Origin: Asterias rubens
Taxonomy: Eukaryota
Length of the DNA stretch: 64,000 nt
Reading direction: 5' to 3'
Assembly (NCBI RefSeq): GCF_902459465.1
Contig: NC_047077.1
Coordinates: 3,348,001 to 3,412,000 of the forward strand
Part shown: positions 39,331 through 54,054 of the stretch, piece by piece
Position numbering within the stretch: the first letter of the stretch is position 1
Layout: each line of letters starts with the position of its first letter
Notes under the pieces: model-generated
Database searches by the model: none
What the model was told of the DNA's origin: nothing
What the model saw: the letters and a program-made list of their open reading frames with translations, nothing else
Translations under genes and position numbers: made by a program

Positions 39331-40422
39331 TAAAAATGGTTTGGTTGTTCATACAAAACCCTTTGACTTTCCAAGGTGCCTCATACCGAATCAACATGAG
39401 CAATTGAATATCCACATCAGTAACTCTAAACAGTTGGCACACACCTGAAATACATGTATGTGTAGCTGATCAAGAACTGAACTGTGGGGTGGATGTCATC
39501 GCATGCATAAGGTCTATACTGTACTACTACGATGTACGTAGTAGATAGCTGATCATTGAAAGGTGTAGTAGGATATATATTTATAAATCTACGTAGTTCA
39601 ACACTGCGGCGAAAAATACTACGTTATTTTCATTACATCTTTTAATTATTAATACAAAAATTGACTTATTTTAGGTCCAACTAATCTATTAATAGTCTAC
39701 ATGTACAATAAATCTGTGTTCAAATCCATTCTGGTCTTCACATGACTTCTTCAACAAAAATAAATAAATAAATAAATAAACAAAAAATAAAAAATCATTG
39801 ATGCTTTTCATTGGCCCAGCCAGCAACTGGAAAGATATTTAATTTACTACACATGATAAATTCAAACCATGATCAGAAAGACAACTAATAAAATAAAAAG
39901 TAACAACAACAAAAAAGACATACAAAAAATAGGGAGAGAAAGAAAAACAAAAGAATATGCTAGATCTAGGAATAGAAAAACACCTACTATTAAAAATATT
40001 TCCCCAGCAAAGTTTAAACACAGTCATAGTTTATTGTCTCACAGTTCCAAACCTCTTGTTAAAAACAACCTTAGACCCAAACCCAACACTTTCCCCTCTT
40101 CTCTTGTTTTCATTTATCACATAAAAAAGCACCACATTCAATCAGTTATTCCAGGCAAACAAAATCGAAGATTGAATGAGACAGAAAAAAACCCAGCTAC
40201 ATTTTTTTTGAATTTACGACAGTTTTTGTACAAAACACCATATATTTCACAGCCCAGCAACCTTTTTTTAAAAACACTGTTTGGGGCCAGCACCATAGCA
40301 GAGAAAAGCAAACCCCTCATCAGAAAATAAATTCCTTCATAAATAAAGAGGTAAATGAAGAAGGAAACTGAAGTAAAAGAAAGCAAACCGAGCTGTAAAG
40401 ACTGGTGCTTAAAGTTTGGACT

Positions 40423-40589
40423 CTATGCATAGAATTCCTTGGTGTCTTTCCAGTAGGCCGTTGGGTCCTTGACTTTGTGAGGTTCATCCAGTGAATAACT
40501 TCCCTCGTCCTTCTTCTTAACACGATAGATGAGGAACATCGTAATCAGAACGATAGTGATCAATGTCAAGACAACTGCACCAACCAAAG
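40423..40589 (-). CDS. SDC: Syndecan last coding exon: TM plus cytoplasmic domain
   Basis: (A)LVGAVVLTLITIVLITMFLIYRVKKKDEGSYSLDEPHKVKDPTAYWKDTKEFYA*; ttttcttcttgacag acceptor. Confidence 0.97.
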
Positions 40590-43500
40590 CTGTCAAGAAG
40601 AAAACAGGAAGTGATGAAAAGAAGGTTACTTTTATAACTCTTGTCTTATCTTCTCAGGAATTCTGCCTACGAACTTATCTCAATCGACGAATATCAATCG
40701 ACGTGTGCCACTTTATCAGTAATCTAATGTTCAGACTGGTTCGCCTGGTCCATAAGGCAAAGGTTTTATTTACCTCTGTGGAACCAAACAACCCATAAGC
40801 AGATTGCTTATTGGTCCAAACCAGCCACAAGCAAGATTGCTTGCGGCTGGTTTGGTTGCACAGCGATGAATACAACAGACTTGGTTATGGTTTGAAGTAA
40901 CACAAATTGCCTCAGAAGTATTTGTAGATTTTGAAAGAAGACGTGGTTAATGTATATTTGGTTTGCAGTAACACCATGTGTGTATCTACCATACCTCACT
41001 ATGCAATGCCTAAAATCCTTTACATTGTTAATGGTTATTGATAAGCTGAAATAAGTTTTAATACTGAATGGAATGTGGCCATCAAACAGGCTTGAGATAA
41101 GGAGGAATCTCAAGGAGATCTGCATCGAGCTGCTCAGCACAAAAACAAGCTCAGCACAACAAAATTCAACCCTTTCAATTCCGACATCCATGTCATTAAA
41201 AACCTGTTGGCGATCCAAACTTTTGGTTGACTCGCCCTGCGAGGGTTAAAGCATTTATAGGCCTATGGCCTCTATTATAATTTTAGATTTAAAAAAACAG
41301 TTTTTGTAAATCTGTTGTAACGGTGGGATTGATGAAAATTCTGACATATCTGTCTAATAATACTAAGCTTCACACTGTCAATTTGCCAATACATTACACA
41401 TTTTTTCAAAAATTAATGATGGTTAAAATAATCGAACCCATACTATATGGCATATAGTATCTCCTTTTTACCGATATTAAGGGGCTCTTTGCTGCAGTTG
41501 CGTCGCTGATAGTTGTCATCGGCAATCTGAGTCTACCAGGTAAAAGACCGCAAGACTAAACTAATGTAGCGCCACTCATTTTACTCTAAATCACGGACAA
41601 TTTATACGTCAAAAAACAAAACGTACACTGCTATAACTATAAGCACAGAATGGCGCAATGTATCATAAGTTTGCGATGAACTTTTACTTTGCGACCACTA
41701 ACATGTCATCGCAAGATTGTCATCACTAAATAAAACTTTGCGACGAGTATATTCATCGTTAAGTTTTAGTGAAATCGTCGGCTAAAAATCCATCACTAAG
41801 TTGCGATGGATTTTAGATTTAGCGATCGATTTCGGCGTTTGCGATGACCAAAACGCGTTAGTGAAATCGACCCCTGGACTGGGTTTTTTTTTCACATAAG
41901 TGCCCATTACTGCAGGCAATTGCCTTGCCCCTTTCAGAGCAAAGTTCAAGGCCTGTGATGGATGAGGGGTTTAAGGGATAACTCACCTGCTAAGAGTACT
42001 GGACTACCAAGAACCATTTTAAAGAAGCCCTGTTTCTCTTTCTTATCTTTGACCTCTAGTTTGTTGTTGTGTACATTGTTACCAATCTCATTGGACATGG
42101 TTGTGCTCATGACTGGCTTCATTGGGGGTGATGTATCAAAGAATATTTCATTGTCGGTCAGGCCGTTGTTGTTATCAGGAGATACTGATGTTGGCATGTC
42201 AGGGGTAGGGTTAGACTTCTGTAAAGTCAAAAGAAAAGCATGGTTAGTTTTTAAGGGAATACTTTCACTTTAAAGTGAATGATGACTGGTAGTTCCTACT
42301 AGGTGTTTAGTAATTTGTCAGGCATGATCTTTGAACCTAGAAAATTTAACATTTTTAAGTGTTGGTTTCCATTCATGCATTGGTCTATCTTTCTATACAC
42401 CTGCCACTTCTAGCCAGAACAGGAAAACAAGGTCAATTTCCATTTCAAATGTTTATAATTTGAGACCATTCCTGATATGCTGAACCTATTTTCAGTCTAC
42501 CACATTTCAGTATCTGTTGTCCTAATTGCACACAGTTAACTTTACTATGGTTTCTGAGTGCTGGCTCAGTCTATAGTAAAACAAAATAATAATGAAGACT
42601 TATAATGTGCACATATCCACCCTGCTGGGTAATCAAGGCGCATGATGCCTGATCATTACTTACATTAGGTTTGCCTGGTTTCTTTGTGGGCTTCACAGTT
42701 GAAACATCAACAGCGTCTGTGGGAGTAATGAAGTGCAAGAAATAACAGTTTTAGTAATTGTATATAGAAGTGTCATGTACATATTCACAATGATAGCAGG
42801 CCTGTGTGCTTCGTTTTTGAAAGGGCAAGGGCACCAATGCATTTTCTCCTTGATGAAGGGCACCCTTTGAAGAAATTGTCAGCTGAGGTCTCCAATTCAA
42901 GCATCTGAAAACACACAACTTGGGCGACAAGGGTGTTTTTTTTTCTTCCATTATTCTCTCGCCACTTTGACGACCAATCGAGTCCAAGTTTTTACAGGTT
43001 TGTTATTTTATGCCTATGTTGGGATACACCAAGTGAGAAGACTGGTCTTTGTCAATTATCAATAGTGTCCAGTGCCTTTAAAGCTAGGGGTGAGAGTTGA
43101 CAGAGAGAGAGAGAGAGAGAGTGTTACCTGAGCCAGTTGGTGTTACCCTGATGCTTCTCTTGTCTACAGTAAGAGATGTAGTACTGTCACTCAATGTGTT
43201 TCCAGCCAGTGTGCTTTTAATAGCACTCTCTACATCAGATGCAACGGCAGTTGTGTCCTCACTAAATGTAATCTCTGTTGTGACAACAAGACTCCCATCA
43301 GTGATTGAGACTCCAACACAATCCTCTGCTTGGCTGGTTAGTTCATTTGTTCGCAAGGAGGCTAGGAGCTAAGTAAGAGAAAACAAGTCAGACAAATCAG
43401 AAGATTATCAGAAGAACCAAAATAGAAAATGTAGCATGAATCTCATCATCCAAGCCAAAAAAAAAAAAAAACTCAGCTTAACCATTAAGGTCTACCCCCA

Positions 43501-46500
43501 TAGCTTAACTGAGTGAAGTTTGGTTTAAAATTACCAAATTTAAATAGGTATGGAAACATGACTAAATCACCAAAAAAAGCTACTTTGCTCATTCCATGAA
43601 AATTCAAAAGTAAGTAAGATGTAAATGAAAAGAAAAAAAGATTCCTATACTTGTTTTTGTTATAACATATAAATTATCAATTAAAACCCACAGGGAAACT
43701 CACTGGGTAAATTTTAAAATGATTTTGAGGGTTGAACAAAGAATTGTCTCGAGTGGGATTCGAGCCAACGACCTCCGGAATAACGTGCCGGCGCTCTACC
43801 AACTGAGCTATCTAGCCCTATGTTGGTGATCCCCTGACTGCCGCTTCCCAGGTTGTATCGTAATTTGGGTGTGACTCTTGGCTACATGGTAGTTAACGGT
43901 TGTATGGTTTCTGACTGGCACCCCCTACCATGGATATCGACAAAATAGAGACACGGCCAATATAGGGCTAGATAGCTCAGTTGGTAGAACGCCTGCACGT
44001 TAATCAGGAGGTCGTTGGTTCGAATCCCACTCTAGTCAATTCCTTGTTCGGCCCCAAAAATCAGTGAAGTTTGACTTCAAATCATTTCTCGATCATTAAA
44101 ACAACTTGGAGAGACAACAAATGACCAACAAGTTATGGAAACATGACTAAATCACCATAGTAGCTACTTTGTTCATTCATTGAAAATTCCAAAGCAAGGA
44201 AGATGTATGTCAATACATTAATTGTTTCTATAACAACATTTAATTTAAAAAGATCATATTTGTAGTAGGGTAGATAATCTTAAGCCATAGACTTACAACA
44301 GCACAGACTGTGTCAAACACTTCCAGTGACTGTCTTGATTTAGGATCTGCATGTGCCGGCTCAAACACTGCCTTCTTGTCACCAATCTTGTTAATCCTGA
44401 TGGTGTTATCAAACTTGGGCTTGGCTACAACTACACCTGAAATGACAACAAAAATAAGCAATTGTTATTAAACTAGGTATTGATTAAAACAGGTTGAATA
44501 GGTATTGATCAATTATAAAAAAATACTATGATCATTTAAAACAAATTATAACCCTTTTTACTTATATTTTAACGTTCAACTACAATAAGGGAATCAATGT
44601 GTGGTGAAGAGGTTTTCAACTAGCACGACTAGTGGTTTAAACCCGCGCCGAGGCCTGGACTTGATAGTTTTACCGAGACGGAGTCGAGGTAAATTATTAA
44701 CTACCAGGCCTCGGCGGTTTTAAACCACTAGTTGAAAACCGATTCAACACACTTTGATTCCCATTCATAAATACCTTTTCGGTCAAAAAACATCAACACT
44801 TTTTGGTCAAAAGGTAAAATAAATGCAAAAATTATAATTGTTTAATGATTTCTTTCAACACAACACCCCTCCAGCTTTGAAAATGTCAGGCCCTCCGCCG
44901 CCCTCGGGTAAACAACTCCTTATAAGGAGATGCTGTGCGCATCGCGCTTATCGCGTGATGTTGCACAACTGTTTCAGCCGTTGCTCTCGATCAAAAGGAA
45001 CAAAGAAAATGTCTTATACGCACGTGTCACGCCCGTGTTTCAACACTTTTTACTGGTGTTATATCATCTGTCTAAGGTATTTATGAATGTAGTCTAATAT
45101 AAAATGGCATTCAAACTAAAACGATGACTGCAAGTTTTTATTAAACTAGGTTTAATCAGGGATGACTCCAAGTTTTTAATTATTAAACTAGGTTTAATCA
45201 GGGGTTGATTAAACTAGGTTGAAACAGGGATTGATTAAACCAAGTTGAATCAGTGATTGATTGAACCAGGTTGAATCAGGTACATGACTAAACTGTACAT
45301 ACATGATGGTGTACATGTACATTGAAACGATATAATAGATGTTAAATTTGCATCAGCGATAAAGAATATTAATTTTGGTTTTTTACCCATACACCGATGT
45401 GTGTTAGCACTGTTTACTCAGTACTTTCCCCCGAGTCCTGTGAAAATTAATGTACATTGAAGTTAATAGTTAGTGGCAGTACATGTAGATGTCTAATCTG
45501 ATGTTGGTTGCTCAGGAACTTCCTCCTATTTTAATTTATCATAATGAGACATTGTCTCAGAAATGTTTTCATAACGATTCGGTATGATGCAGTGGCTATA
45601 AAAATAACGGATATAGCGCTGGTACCAAATCTGACAATGTTTGTTTATGTACATTGTATTTTAGCGTCACACATTCAACCTTGACTTAACCCTTTTCAGT
45701 ACCGAAGTCACATACTCCAGTACCCTGGGGACCATGTTTAGTTTAGACACTCCTACTTTCAATACTAACCGAGCACAAACATAAACTGTACATATATTGA
45801 TATGACCATCATGTACATACAAATCTTAAAGTCTATGGGGAACTTTTGAAGGGGCACCAAGGCCAAGGCCAAGGCCTCCCTGGCCTCTGAGTAATTACAG
45901 GCCTGCACTGTACTGGTTTGTAAGTTGCCCCATGACAACAGAATGGAGGAAATACATGTACATACAATTCAAACCGTACTTTTTGTAATGTTCATCTTTT
46001 GACTGCAATACAAGTTAATGTTAACTTATTCAGCTGTTTATCATAGTACTGATTTATTCATGAAGGATGACAAAAGGTTCTTGTTACAATGTATGTGTGA
46101 TTGAGTAGTGTGTATAGAAGGTTGTATGTAATTGGTCTCTCCTGCAGTTGTCTAGATGTGTCTTAGACACGAATGATATGTGCAAGTTTGGAGGTTGGTG
46201 GAAAATCTTACTGTATACATAAATCCCTTCCGACTCCCAGTTATCAAAACCAAGTCATATGGTTCCTGATCTTTTTGATACTTTGTAGCAGTCTTTCAGA
46301 GGTTTGTTTCAAAAAAACCTGGTGAAAACATATCTGTTTACTTTGTACAATCAGTGATTTCCCTTACAGCGCAAACATGAAGGTAGGTACCTCAAGGTGA
46401 TTTCAATGATGCCCTTTATAAGAATGGTTTTATTATAAATATCATTATCATCAATCTGTAGCTAATAAGTTATTGTGTCTTTCCTGTTATGGCTTTGTTC

Positions 46501-52500: not shown

Positions 52501-54054
52501 AAGGAAATTAGATTGACAGCCAGGATTTGCAGTAGAGTTATTCAGCTGTAACTAAGTTATCTAACCAGTATTCTCATTGTGCCACAAACCGGCTTTGTGA
52601 TACTGTAGCAAGGCATAGCAAGACCCTCTCATACTTTGAGCCCTTTTGTAAAAGTTAAGTGTCTAAAAAAGAAAGGACCCTGGATTCAGCATTCTCAACT
52701 CAACTGCAGCACCCCTCCACAGTGCTCTGCCCTTGGCAGAGAGACTGACTGGCAATTTAGAGGCCAAATATTTCCCCTCTAATTACGTTAAGGATCTCTA
52801 AATTGAGTCACAGCGTTGTAATTTACTTACGTACTCTGTGAATTTATAGCATGTTTGTCTGGGCTTGAGGGCAACGTAATCTCCACATTCATATTTCTGA
52901 GGAAACGTTCCCAAAATGTGTCAACCCTTTTCAATTTAAATGACGTACATTGCTTTAATCTTATGCCAACTTTAAAAGGACAGTGTAGGTACAGTTTCTG
53001 AAGTAACGTAACTCATAGACAACTGTTACCTCAGATAATCGCTCACTTTCAGACGTCATTTCTTCCAGTTGAAATATTTGAAAAGACCGACTCCCACTTC
53101 CAAACTTCAGGTTTTATCTCTCTGATATATCACAGTAGCACACATTAAGAGCCCTACCATCAGTCCATAGGAGTCAAGATGTCTCCTATGAATAGCTGTT
53201 ACAGTTTTAGAGGAATTACAAACTTAACATCTTAACTGAACAGTTGTAGAACTATCATTACAAATTATATTCCTTTAAGTGGCTACTTCACTTCTTTTCA
53301 TCCTTTGGATGGGACGTAAAGCCATTAGTCACATTTGCTGTGTAACTCACGCAAAAGATCCCAGTGCACTTATCGAAAATAGAAGGGGTTCGCCCCGGTG
53401 TTCCTGGTTTGATTGGCAGCATATTGCAACACAGCAATATGTAAAAGGAGTAGGTCTCATAATAATTCAAACGTAGTCCCACATACCTTCCAGGAAATAC
53501 TGTATGTTAAAGCATCTTGAGCGTCACTGGGCGAACAGATATGCGCGCTTTATAAGAAGCCACTATTATTCTTCTTCTTCTCTAATTTAGGAAAACAGAA
53601 AATCAGCAAAGAGGAAGAAGTCTGAGAGCCGAATCCACTGGTATGCAGTTTATCATGTATGTACCTTTATCATGGTGCAGCCATCTTGAATTTCTCCAGA
53701 GTGATATCAATGTTACCAAACCGAGGCTGGAAGAACAAACTAGTCTGGTTCCGAATTGCAAGATGACTATAAGCATGCATTATTGTTATTCGATACAAGA
53801 ACATGACCAAAATGGAGGCAGCATGATAAAGTTATATCAAAGCTCATATTCGACACTTATACTAATCAAAGAAGTGGTTCAATATTACATGTAGAAGGCT
53901 TTATTACTGTACCTGAAGTGCGTATATGTACTGGCGTCCCTTCTGTGGCACCAGACCCTTGCTCTCCCAGCTCTCCTGGTGCATCTGTAACATAATCCTC
54001 ATCATCTATAACCCCACTACCCTCAGCAAACACCAGATCGGGGTCTCCTTGTGC
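40423..54054 (-). CDS. SDC: Syndecan (transmembrane heparan-sulfate proteoglycan core protein) with SEA-like module; 5' signal-peptide exon not located
   Basis: Join (minus): 53913-54054, [47023-47034], 44297-44436, 43128-43368, 42664-42716, 41987-42218, 40423-40589 = 987 nt including stop, all phases compatible. It ends with a TM segment then YRVKKKDEGSY (C1) ... KEFYA* (C2 PDZ motif), the syndecan hallmark. EGSG and QGSG Ser-Gly sites lie in an acidic N-terminal region. Confidence 0.93.
41987..42218 (-). CDS. SDC: Syndecan juxtamembrane ectodomain exon
   Basis: KSNPTPD...VLGSPVLLA, G|GTGAGT donor phase 1 joins the TM exon. Confidence 0.9.
42664..42716 (-). CDS. SDC: Syndecan small linker exon (AVDVSTVKPTKKPGKPN)
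   Basis: Phase 1 to 0, exactly bridges its neighbours; GTAAGT donor. Confidence 0.85.
42870..43081 (+). mobile_element. 3' half of MITE family A, fused to a GGGCAC-family fragment (42798-42870)
   Basis: Right TIR plus TTAA only. Confidence 0.65.
43128..43368 (-). CDS. SDC: Syndecan exon, C-terminal half of SEA-like module (DGSLVVTTEITF)
   Basis: Phase 0 to 1; ctcttacttag acceptor. Confidence 0.85.
43674..44062. repeat. Family D tRNA-like repeat, head-to-head inverted pair
   Basis: Minus copy 43674-43825, shared 140-bp core, plus tRNA-like module 43966-44038. Confidence 0.75.
44297..44436 (-). CDS. SDC: Syndecan exon, N-terminal half of SEA-like module (KFDNTIRINKI...F.P...DPKS)
   Basis: Phase 1 to 0; ttgttgtcatttcag acceptor, GTAAGT donor. 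Confidence 0.85.
44589..45089. mobile_element. Palindromic element plus adjacent TIR-bounded segment
   Basis: About 60-bp arms 44589-44657 / 44704-44762; CATTCATAAATACCTT (44762) and AAGGTATTTATGAATG (45089). Confidence 0.6.
45140..45292 (+). repeat. Minisatellite, about 21-bp unit
   Basis: Repeats of (G/T)ATTAAACTAGGTT(T/G)AATCAGG. Confidence 0.7.
47023..47034 (-). CDS. SDC: Candidate 12-nt syndecan microexon (V-S-G-L-R)
   Basis: tttcaccccag|TCAGCGGACTGC|gtaagt, frame-preserving phase 1 to 1. Confidence 0.5.
47529..47761. mobile_element. MITE with GGG(G)CCCAATTTCAT termini (Harbinger-like end sequence)
   Basis: About 27-bp TIR: GGGCCCAATTTCATGGCTCTGCTTACC / GGTAAGCAGAGCCATAAAATTAAGCCC; relatives near 1300 and 59416. 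Confidence 0.65.
49745..50030. mobile_element. Palindromic Penelope-like end with damaged hammerhead motifs in both arms
   Basis: About 125-bp inverted arms (49745-49872 and about 49903-50030) around a third partial motif. Confidence 0.65.
50556..50730 (+). mobile_element. GGGCAC-rich MITE with CAGGCCTG ends
   Basis: Other copies at about 51480-51662 (-) and 54180-54355 (+); fragments at 42798, 45830 and 61283. Confidence 0.65.
51758..52215 (+). repeat. Family D tRNA-like repeat, tandem copies preceded by a perfect 30-bp inverted repeat
   Basis: IR arms 51758-51787 and 51839-51868; about 290-bp period; related copy at 13050-13215. Confidence 0.75.
53290..53575 (+). mobile_element. 5'-truncated DeuSINE-like element
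   Basis: TTGGATGGGACGTAAAGCC...AAAAGATCCCAGTGCACTTATCGAA...GGGGTTCGCCCCGGTGTTCCTGG resembles the Deu domain of AmnSINE1 as recalled; GCGCTTTATAAGA and TATTATT tail. Confidence 0.65.
53913..54054 (-). CDS. SDC: Syndecan GAG-attachment exon (AQGDPDLVFAEGSGVIDDEDY...EQGSG)
   Basis: ttttgctttttgcag acceptor, CAG|GTACAG donor; Ser-Gly flanked by acidic residues. Confidence 0.85.

Follow-up and report, generated by a model that had tools for sequence, protein, structure and literature searches.

A SEA domain of predicted self-cleaving type in the syndecan of the sea star Asterias rubens

The ectodomain of syndecans is commonly portrayed as intrinsically disordered, and its shedding is ascribed to metalloproteases. 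We analyzed a stretch of 64,000 nucleotides (nt) from the sea star Asterias rubens (contig NC_047077.1, positions 3,348,001 to 3,412,000; hereafter the window), the minus strand of which carries the syndecan gene of this species. Two exons of the gene encode a module that is almost certainly a genuine SEA domain, with the ferredoxin-like fold of that family, and they are spliced into the syndecan mRNA. The domain carries a Gly-Ser pair in the turn between strands beta2 and beta3, and strong comparative evidence argues that the SEA of echinoderm syndecans is of the self-cleaving kind, so that the A. rubens protein is predicted to cut itself between G141 and S142.

A first-pass annotation of the window, made from the letters alone, had proposed a syndecan with a SEA-like module and had left it undecided whether this architecture was already annotated in echinoderms. 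It is already published. The brittle star Ophiomastix (Ophiocoma) wendtii has a "Syndecan and SEA domain protein" (UniProt A0A0K0M974, here P0011; Seaver & Livingston 2015, PMC4336488), and Dolmatov & Nizhnichenko (2023, PMC10381214) detected SEA reliably in holothurian syndecans and, using SMART, found it at sub-threshold level in A. rubens and P. miniata. The A. rubens syndecan thus belongs to a published echinoderm group, of which it had so far been a sub-threshold member. No discussion of the autoproteolysis motif was found in the text of either paper, and we found no paper in the literature that ties a syndecan SEA to autoproteolysis. Our additions appear to be the fold-level confirmation in an asteroid, the invariance of the Gly-Ser pair, the organization of the module as a 1-1 exon cassette, and the absence of this cassette from a sea-urchin gene.

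SEA exons in the syndecan transcript and their fold

The gene product is P0001, a protein of 346 amino acids that NCBI names "syndecan-3-like [Asterias rubens]". Six exons in the window, once joined, gave an exact translation of residues 23-346, and exon B, the second of the two SEA exons, was 100% identical to residues 117-196. Every exon border had the canonical GT..AG, the window contained no runs of N, and a search of the window for exon 1, the signal-peptide exon, found nothing; this exon lies outside. Syndecan identity was provided by the last coding exon, which matched Pfam Syndecan (PF01034) above the cutoff (E 1.3e-17 to 1.8e-17) and ends in KKKDEGSYSLDEPHKVKDPTAYWKDTKEFYA before the stop; the cytoplasmic KKKDEGSY...EFYA is invariant among the echinoderm sequences aligned. 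The peptide strings quoted in the first-pass annotation were all present on the minus strand. That annotation had placed the module at 43140-44420; its two exons are real, and its outer limits fell 12-16 nt short, at each end, of the borders defined by RNA and splice sites. The two exons, A and B, amount to 140 + 241 = 381 nt, or 127 codons, entered in phase 1 and left in phase 1, and they therefore constitute a frame-neutral 1-1 cassette.

Transcription was assessed by comparing positions 40200-44700 of the window (4,501 bases, with exon 2 outside) with two contig sets from one organism (A) and two raw RNA sequencing runs from another (B). The substitutions of P0003, the A. amurensis protein, recur in organism B; one of them, D140A (position 43298), directly precedes the invariant Gly-Ser pair described below. 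Two contigs of organism A, X1 (1,575 nt) and X2 (1,483 nt), pass through all exons, and X1 runs on from 43130 to 42718. The joint that connects the SEA exons, 43368 to 44297, was found in both contigs and in 84 + 106 = 190 raw reads of X13. The joints further downstream were comparably represented, with two contigs and 111 + 103 = 214 raw X13 reads at 42218 to 42664, and two contigs and 54 + 56 = 110 raw X13 reads at 40589 to 41987. At 44441, a loose end shared by 166 X13 reads had a consensus that is the end of exon 2. Because contigs, joint reads and this loose end agree, we conclude that the SEA exons belong to the syndecan mRNA and that both are constitutively included in two Asterias species. 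The two exons proposed in the first-pass annotation are joined to each other in these RNAs.

The structure predicted for the joined peptide is that of a SEA domain. AlphaFold2, run on an alignment of the module, returned a confident model (predicted local distance difference test, pLDDT, 85.8; predicted template modeling score 0.79) with the order beta-alpha-beta-beta-alpha-beta, which is the SEA fold. When this model was compared with the PDB by Foldseek, ranks 1-7 were all SEA domains (MUC16, TMPRSS6 and a mouse transmembrane protease; E 6e-5 to 3e-3), with template modeling scores by query of 0.56-0.69 and a steep fall thereafter. Against AFDB Swiss-Prot, 30/30 of the matches listed were SEA regions, from enteropeptidase, the TMPRSS family, agrin, IMPG1/2, UMODL1 and MUC1; the AFDB fold clusters were mostly agrin, SEA-domain, mucin and TMPRSS entries, and language-model features in the ESM Atlas led to MUC16 SEA clusters (score 0.91). 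The SEA-like module of the first-pass annotation is therefore borne out at the level of the fold. Confidence in the full-length model was confined to residues 73-195 and the transmembrane helix, and pLDDT was <50 for residues 20-72, the Ser-Gly region, and for residues 196-278, the stalk. The SEA is therefore the only folded module of the ectodomain, the remainder of which is predicted to be disordered. The Ser-Gly motifs, EGSGV and QGSGA, lie in exon 2 with acidic flanks, N-terminal of the module, and are presumed from their sequence to be glycosaminoglycan attachment sites.

Evidence from sequence comparison was weak for the sea-star module by itself and strong for the set of orthologues. 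Against Pfam SEA (PF01390), the A. rubens module scored 18.0 bits (E 0.0033), below the gathering threshold of 26.4 bits, in an alignment covering model positions 13-106 of 106; exon B alone scored 15.5 bits (E 0.019). We assembled 14 orthologous modules, 5 of them from sea stars (asteroids), 5 from brittle stars (ophiuroids), 2 from feather stars (crinoids) and 2 from sea cucumbers (holothurians). PF01390 matched 12/14 of these, with a best E of 9.5e-14, and a precomputed PF01390 annotation exists for the orthologues of ophiuroids and holothurians. Pfam, named in the first-pass annotation as a check, thus recognizes the module in most orthologues and not in A. rubens alone, and we regard the sub-threshold score as a shortfall of sensitivity, not as a contradiction of SEA. 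A profile built from the 14 modules matched solved SEA structures in the PDB, namely ADGRF1 (E 6.6e-6), MUC16 (murine homologue, 1IVZ; 1.6e-4), agrin (2.5e-4) and TMPRSS11D (3.5e-4), as well as MUC1 fragment chains, though weakly. Module identity between echinoderm classes is 16-26%, and the profile alone worked: a brittle-star half-module, searched against the PDB by phmmer, gave nothing relevant.

These data also bear on the reading that the resemblance to SEA arises by chance, or that the exons lie outside the syndecan transcript. What could be said for it is the sub-threshold Pfam score of the single sequence and the outcome of a HMMER search with exon B, which among 1.8 billion representatives returned no distant relatives, only P0001 itself and the protein P0002. 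It is contradicted by splice joints with up to hundreds of reads, by a confident model whose top structural matches are all SEA, and by orthologues that pass Pfam; the RNA joints, the profile match to a solved SEA and the Foldseek results refute it, and we leave it only the slightest residual probability. The P0002 match (932 amino acids, bacterial; E 4e-12 to exon B) was judged spurious; it comprised 18 short, compositionally similar stretches of beta-strand sequence. P0002 itself consists of about 18 copies of a unit of about 50 residues (...ICEGESITVGGVVQTTDGTYSETFT...).

The Gly-Ser turn and predicted self-cleavage

The motif GSLVV, which the first-pass annotation had located exactly, forms a four-residue beta2-beta3 turn in both the module and the full-length model, and in the latter it lies between strands E130-139 and E144-151. 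Only three columns of the module are invariant across the 14 sequences and four classes, and G141 and S142 are two of them (14/14 for each). The surrounding residues vary by class: sea stars have ..ITDGSLVV, brittle stars FRHGSIIT, feather stars FYEGSIVA or FYEGSIIA, and sea cucumbers FSPGSVKV.

The known self-cleaving subgroup of SEA domains includes MUC1, MUC3/12/17, ADGRF1/F5, matriptase and enteropeptidase. For MUC1, Macao, Johansson, Sandberg and Hard are reported to have established that the domain cuts itself as it folds, with hairpin strain driving an N-to-O acyl shift. In our HMMER alignment, the echinoderm hairpin ran without gaps along the ADGRF1 sequence FRNG-SIVA, with Gly-Ser on Gly-Ser; the agrin SEA has no Gly-Ser at the aligned position and has a one-residue insertion in the hairpin. 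When the profile was cut at the Gly, the PDB chain 8hc0_B, a 57-residue ADGRF1 fragment, matched it end-to-end and stopped at the aligned Gly. Cleavage of SEA domains is known to occur in the beta2-beta3 loop at motifs such as GSVVV and GSIVA (PMC6954182), and Lum et al. obtained western-blot bands consistent with cleavage for the GPR110 SEA, which has GSIVA (PMC2830182). The A. rubens domain displays both hallmarks of the subgroup, a G/S followed by beta-branched or hydrophobic residues in the turn and a tight hairpin lacking an insertion relative to ADGRF1. Because the Gly-Ser pair sits in the beta2-beta3 turn, is invariant in four classes and aligns on the end of 8hc0_B, self-cleavage between G141 and S142 is likely in A. 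rubens, with a probability that we put at roughly 0.65 on this comparative sequence evidence.

Self-cleavage would take place as the protein folds in the endoplasmic reticulum. The tight beta2-beta3 hairpin would be strained, and the strain would power an N-to-O acyl shift in which the hydroxyl of Ser142 attacks the carbonyl of Gly141 and the chain is cut between the two residues. One product would be an N-terminal subunit comprising the Ser-Gly sites and beta1-alpha1-beta2, and the other a membrane subunit comprising beta3-alpha2-beta4, the stalk, the transmembrane helix and the tail. The two would be held together non-covalently through their shared beta-sheet, as in MUC1 and ADGRF1. The "possible Cys pair" of the first-pass annotation corresponds to C114 and C133, which are both present in 7 of the 14 orthologues (5 asteroid, 2 crinoid) and both absent from the other 7 (5 ophiuroid, 2 holothurian). 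This pattern fits a lineage-variable disulfide in the N-terminal subunit, which C114-C133 may brace internally in sea stars and feather stars.

An external protease might instead cut the beta2-beta3 loop; candidates are a metalloprotease and a furin-like enzyme of the kind that acts on Notch and human GPR126. Furin does cut the SEA-type domains of Notch2 and human GPR126 in this same loop (PMC6954182), but the A. rubens loop (SITDGSLVV) and its surroundings contain no basic R-X-K/R-R motif, and in the models the loop is a tight four-residue turn and not an extended, exposed segment. As the invariant residues are also Gly-Ser, the signature of autoproteolysis, we consider cleavage by an external protease very improbable.

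Published peptide lists from the brittle-star skeleton (supplement of PMC4336488) offered a view of the protein itself. We compared them with an in-silico digest of P0011; the original search had covered tryptic peptides only. The P0011 peptides found were residues 93-101, 102-114, 115-131, 142-153, 178-188 and 182-197, all of them inside the SEA and flanking G155/S156 on both sides. Every long SEA tryptic peptide was seen save the one spanning the G/S, a 24-residue peptide (154-177) that does not occur in the skeleton lists. The stalk peptides searched and the cytoplasmic peptide DEGSYSLDEPHK were likewise not found there. A missing spanning peptide is the gap expected of a self-cleaved protein in a trypsin-only search, and we take it as a weak hint of cleavage. 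Because both SEA halves co-occur without membrane-proximal parts, the lists further suggest that the ectodomain in the skeleton pool was released below an intact SEA, and not by dissociation of the SEA. The first-pass proposal that the heparan-sulfate-bearing tip is shed without a sheddase therefore finds no support in these samples.

Several observations weigh against self-cleavage of a SEA domain in A. rubens. Besides the sub-threshold Pfam score, only 14 sequences stand in the alignment behind the module model, and AlphaFold is blind to hairpin strain. The asteroid residue at P2' is Leu (GSLVV), where the cited motifs have Val or Ile. The spanning brittle-star peptide, at 24 residues and rich in Ser and Thr, may have been missed for other reasons in a tryptic-only search, and both halves of the SEA were in the same skeleton samples, without peptides of the stalk or tail.

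Some of these observations would be accommodated by a real SEA that stays uncleaved in sea stars, a reading that we regard as possible but clearly the less likely. The domain could then be a folded spacer, could direct the attachment sites toward heparan sulfate in preference to chondroitin sulfate, or could bind matrix or skeleton. Many SEA domains do not cleave, the matched agrin SEA lacks Gly-Ser, and Leu at P2' in asteroids is atypical; SEA is abundant in the brittle-star skeleton with both halves present, and the order of Ser-Gly sites followed by SEA mirrors perlecan domain I. Nevertheless, an adjacent Gly and Ser that are absolutely conserved in a domain so divergent between classes are hard to explain without a role, and the hairpin is equal in length to that of ADGRF1, whose SEA has GSIVA. 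The two roles are not mutually exclusive. The SEA might additionally, or instead, promote the assembly of heparan sulfate on the Ser-Gly sites beside it, by analogy with perlecan domain I, although such a role is speculative. Perlecan domain I has three SGD sites followed by a SEA module, and work by Dolan et al. in 1997 is said to have found that this SEA enhances heparan-sulfate assembly.

A stronger version of the self-cleavage reading holds that the syndecans of echinoderms always exist as self-cleaved heterodimers and that their SEA serves as a mechanical fuse. If the matrix, mutable collagenous tissue or the growing skeleton pulled on the heparan-sulfate chains, the cleaved SEA would unfold under the tension and free the glycosaminoglycan-bearing subunit without a protease, and the exposed stub would remain to signal or to be processed further. 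We consider this version unlikely, and force-dependent release of the glycosaminoglycan-bearing subunit is speculative. If true, it would amount to a force-gated form of syndecan shedding that is absent in vertebrates and was abandoned by sea urchins.

Distribution of the cassette and structure of the gene

Our survey of syndecan architectures found the SEA cassette in each of the four echinoderm classes that we sampled besides sea urchins, namely sea stars, feather stars, sea cucumbers and brittle stars, and neither in sea urchins nor in the other deuterostomes compared. Sea-urchin syndecans (n = 6) are 170-219 amino acids long and lack the SEA; the Heliocidaris protein is named syndecan core protein in nr. 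When mapped by tblastn, the Strongylocentrotus purpuratus gene (locus L001) had the exon order signal peptide, Ser-Gly, micro-exon, stalk, and transmembrane segment with tail, without the two SEA exons. A relic of the cassette was sought by tblastn, with SEA modules of the four classes, in the 2.4-kb S. purpuratus intron (L001 44157-46608) that separates the Ser-Gly exon from the micro-exon, the place expected for the SEA exons, and none was found. The alignment in the 2023 review shows no SEA module in Saccoglossus kowalevskii, Branchiostoma belcheri and Ciona (one sequence each) or in human SDC1-4. Most simply, the cassette would have been gained in the stem lineage of echinoderms and later lost in echinoids; the alternative is an older gain with loss in hemichordates.

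The syndecan-like ectodomain of Crassostrea gigas has a different, Cys-rich insert with CWCVD motifs (alignment of PMC10381214). We suggest that folded modules were acquired independently by syndecan ectodomains in other phyla. The C. gigas insert is one that we presume could be thyroglobulin type-1-like.

Sea urchins aside, a syndecan with a folded SEA of the self-cleaving type would thus be a phylum-wide feature of echinoderms. If cleavage is confirmed, it would offer a natural case of protease-independent or force-sensitive processing of a proteoglycan, a natural experiment in which sea urchins provide the comparison lacking the cassette, and a second proteoglycan, besides perlecan, in which a SEA adjoins glycosaminoglycan sites. 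The value of the observation is tempered because the domain architecture had already been published.

The coordinates of the gene features are collected in the table.

Table. Features of the A. rubens syndecan gene, in positions of the window.
Feature	Position	Strand	Basis and remarks
Exon 2, N-terminal ectodomain with EGSGV and QGSGA	53913-54054	minus	sequence and splice sites; exits in phase 1
SEA exon A, residues 70-116: beta1 and the larger part of alpha1, with C114	44297-44436 (140 nt)	minus	RNA joint, splice sites, model; phase 1 in, phase 0 out
Cys114 codon, helix alpha1	44303-44305	minus
SEA exon B, residues 117-196 and one base: alpha1 end, beta2, Gly-Ser turn, beta3, alpha2, beta4	43128-43368 (241 nt)	minus	contigs X1 and X2, P0001 match, Pfam, model; phase 0 in, phase 1 out
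Cys133 codon, at the beginning of beta2; may form a disulfide with Cys114	43318-43320	minus	co-occurrence
GSLVV, predicted autoproteolysis site G141/S142 in the beta2-beta3 hairpin turn	43282-43296	minus	Gly/Ser conservation, ADGRF1 alignment, model
G141 codon	43294-43296	minus
S142 codon	43291-43293	minus
53-nt micro-exon, first part of the Pro/Thr/Lys-rich stalk	42664-42716	minus	RNA joint 42218/42664, splice sites
Stalk exon, predicted disordered, reaching the start of the transmembrane segment	41987-42218	minus	RNA joint 40589/41987, pLDDT
Last coding exon: transmembrane helix, cytoplasmic C1-V-C2 ending EFYA, stop	40423-40589	minus	Pfam Syndecan PF01034, motif positions

Other features were observed in and around these exons. 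In the stalk exon, at position 42194, 222/280 organism B reads had a 3-nt CAT insertion that lengthens the stalk by one Met (P0003 reads MMPTSV). The interval 43104-43125, a few bases past the donor site of exon B, is a (CT)n/(GA)n microsatellite. The intron between the SEA exons holds an inverted pair of tRNA-like sequences, at 43745-43817 (minus strand) and 43966-44038 (plus strand), which scored 39.1 and 47.1 bits against Rfam tRNA; ARAGORN called the plus-strand copy tRNA-Asn GTT. RNA depth over the pair was very high and loose ends were numerous, a pattern that points to a dispersed family of tRNA-derived repeats and not to unique tRNA genes. Three further intronic stretches (42767-43068, 40955-41105 and 44579-44700) had a word depth in the RNA contig sets that was orders of magnitude above that of the syndecan exons, and joints between opposite strands connected 40989 and 44623. 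These three stretches, which lie in different introns, look like copies of high-copy transcribed repeats, some of them inverted.

Comparison with known systems

P0011 of O. wendtii is an orthologue of the A. rubens protein and has the same succession of signal peptide, acidic Ser-Gly region, SEA, stalk, and syndecan transmembrane segment and tail, together with the invariant Gly-Ser (in FRHGSIIT) and a near-identical cytoplasmic tail. The SEA domains of the two proteins are only 16-20% identical. Brittle-star and sea-cucumber SEA domains pass Pfam, whereas that of A. rubens does not, and the Cys pair of asteroids and crinoids is absent in ophiuroids and holothurians.

MUC1, the prototype of self-cleaving SEA proteins (PDB 2ACM, 6BSB), resembles the A. 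rubens syndecan in its fold and in having a G/S-hydrophobic motif in the beta2-beta3 turn, GSVVV in MUC1 and GSLVV in A. rubens, with an identity of about 15-19%. Both are type I membrane proteins, and the N-terminal subunit of MUC1 is heavily glycosylated. The glycan-bearing part of MUC1 is a mucin tandem repeat, whereas that of the syndecan is a short Ser-Gly segment for glycosaminoglycans, and in the syndecan a long disordered stalk sits between the SEA and the membrane. The SEA of ADGRF1/GPR110 (PDB 7WXU, 8HC0) was the best profile match and aligned without gaps, FRNG/SIVA falling on the echinoderm G/S; ADGRF1 itself is an adhesion G-protein-coupled receptor with a GAIN domain and not a proteoglycan.

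Perlecan domain I shares with the syndecan the placement of glycosaminoglycan Ser-Gly sites directly N-terminal of a SEA in a heparan-sulfate proteoglycan. Perlecan, however, is secreted and has no membrane anchor, and the likeness is one of domain order. The canonical syndecans (human SDC1-4 and those of sea urchin, Saccoglossus, amphioxus and Ciona) have the Pfam Syndecan transmembrane segment and tail ending in EFYA and the N-terminal Ser-Gly sites of the A. rubens protein, and the S. purpuratus gene matches its exon order minus the cassette. What sets the A. rubens syndecan apart from them is the SEA in its ectodomain.

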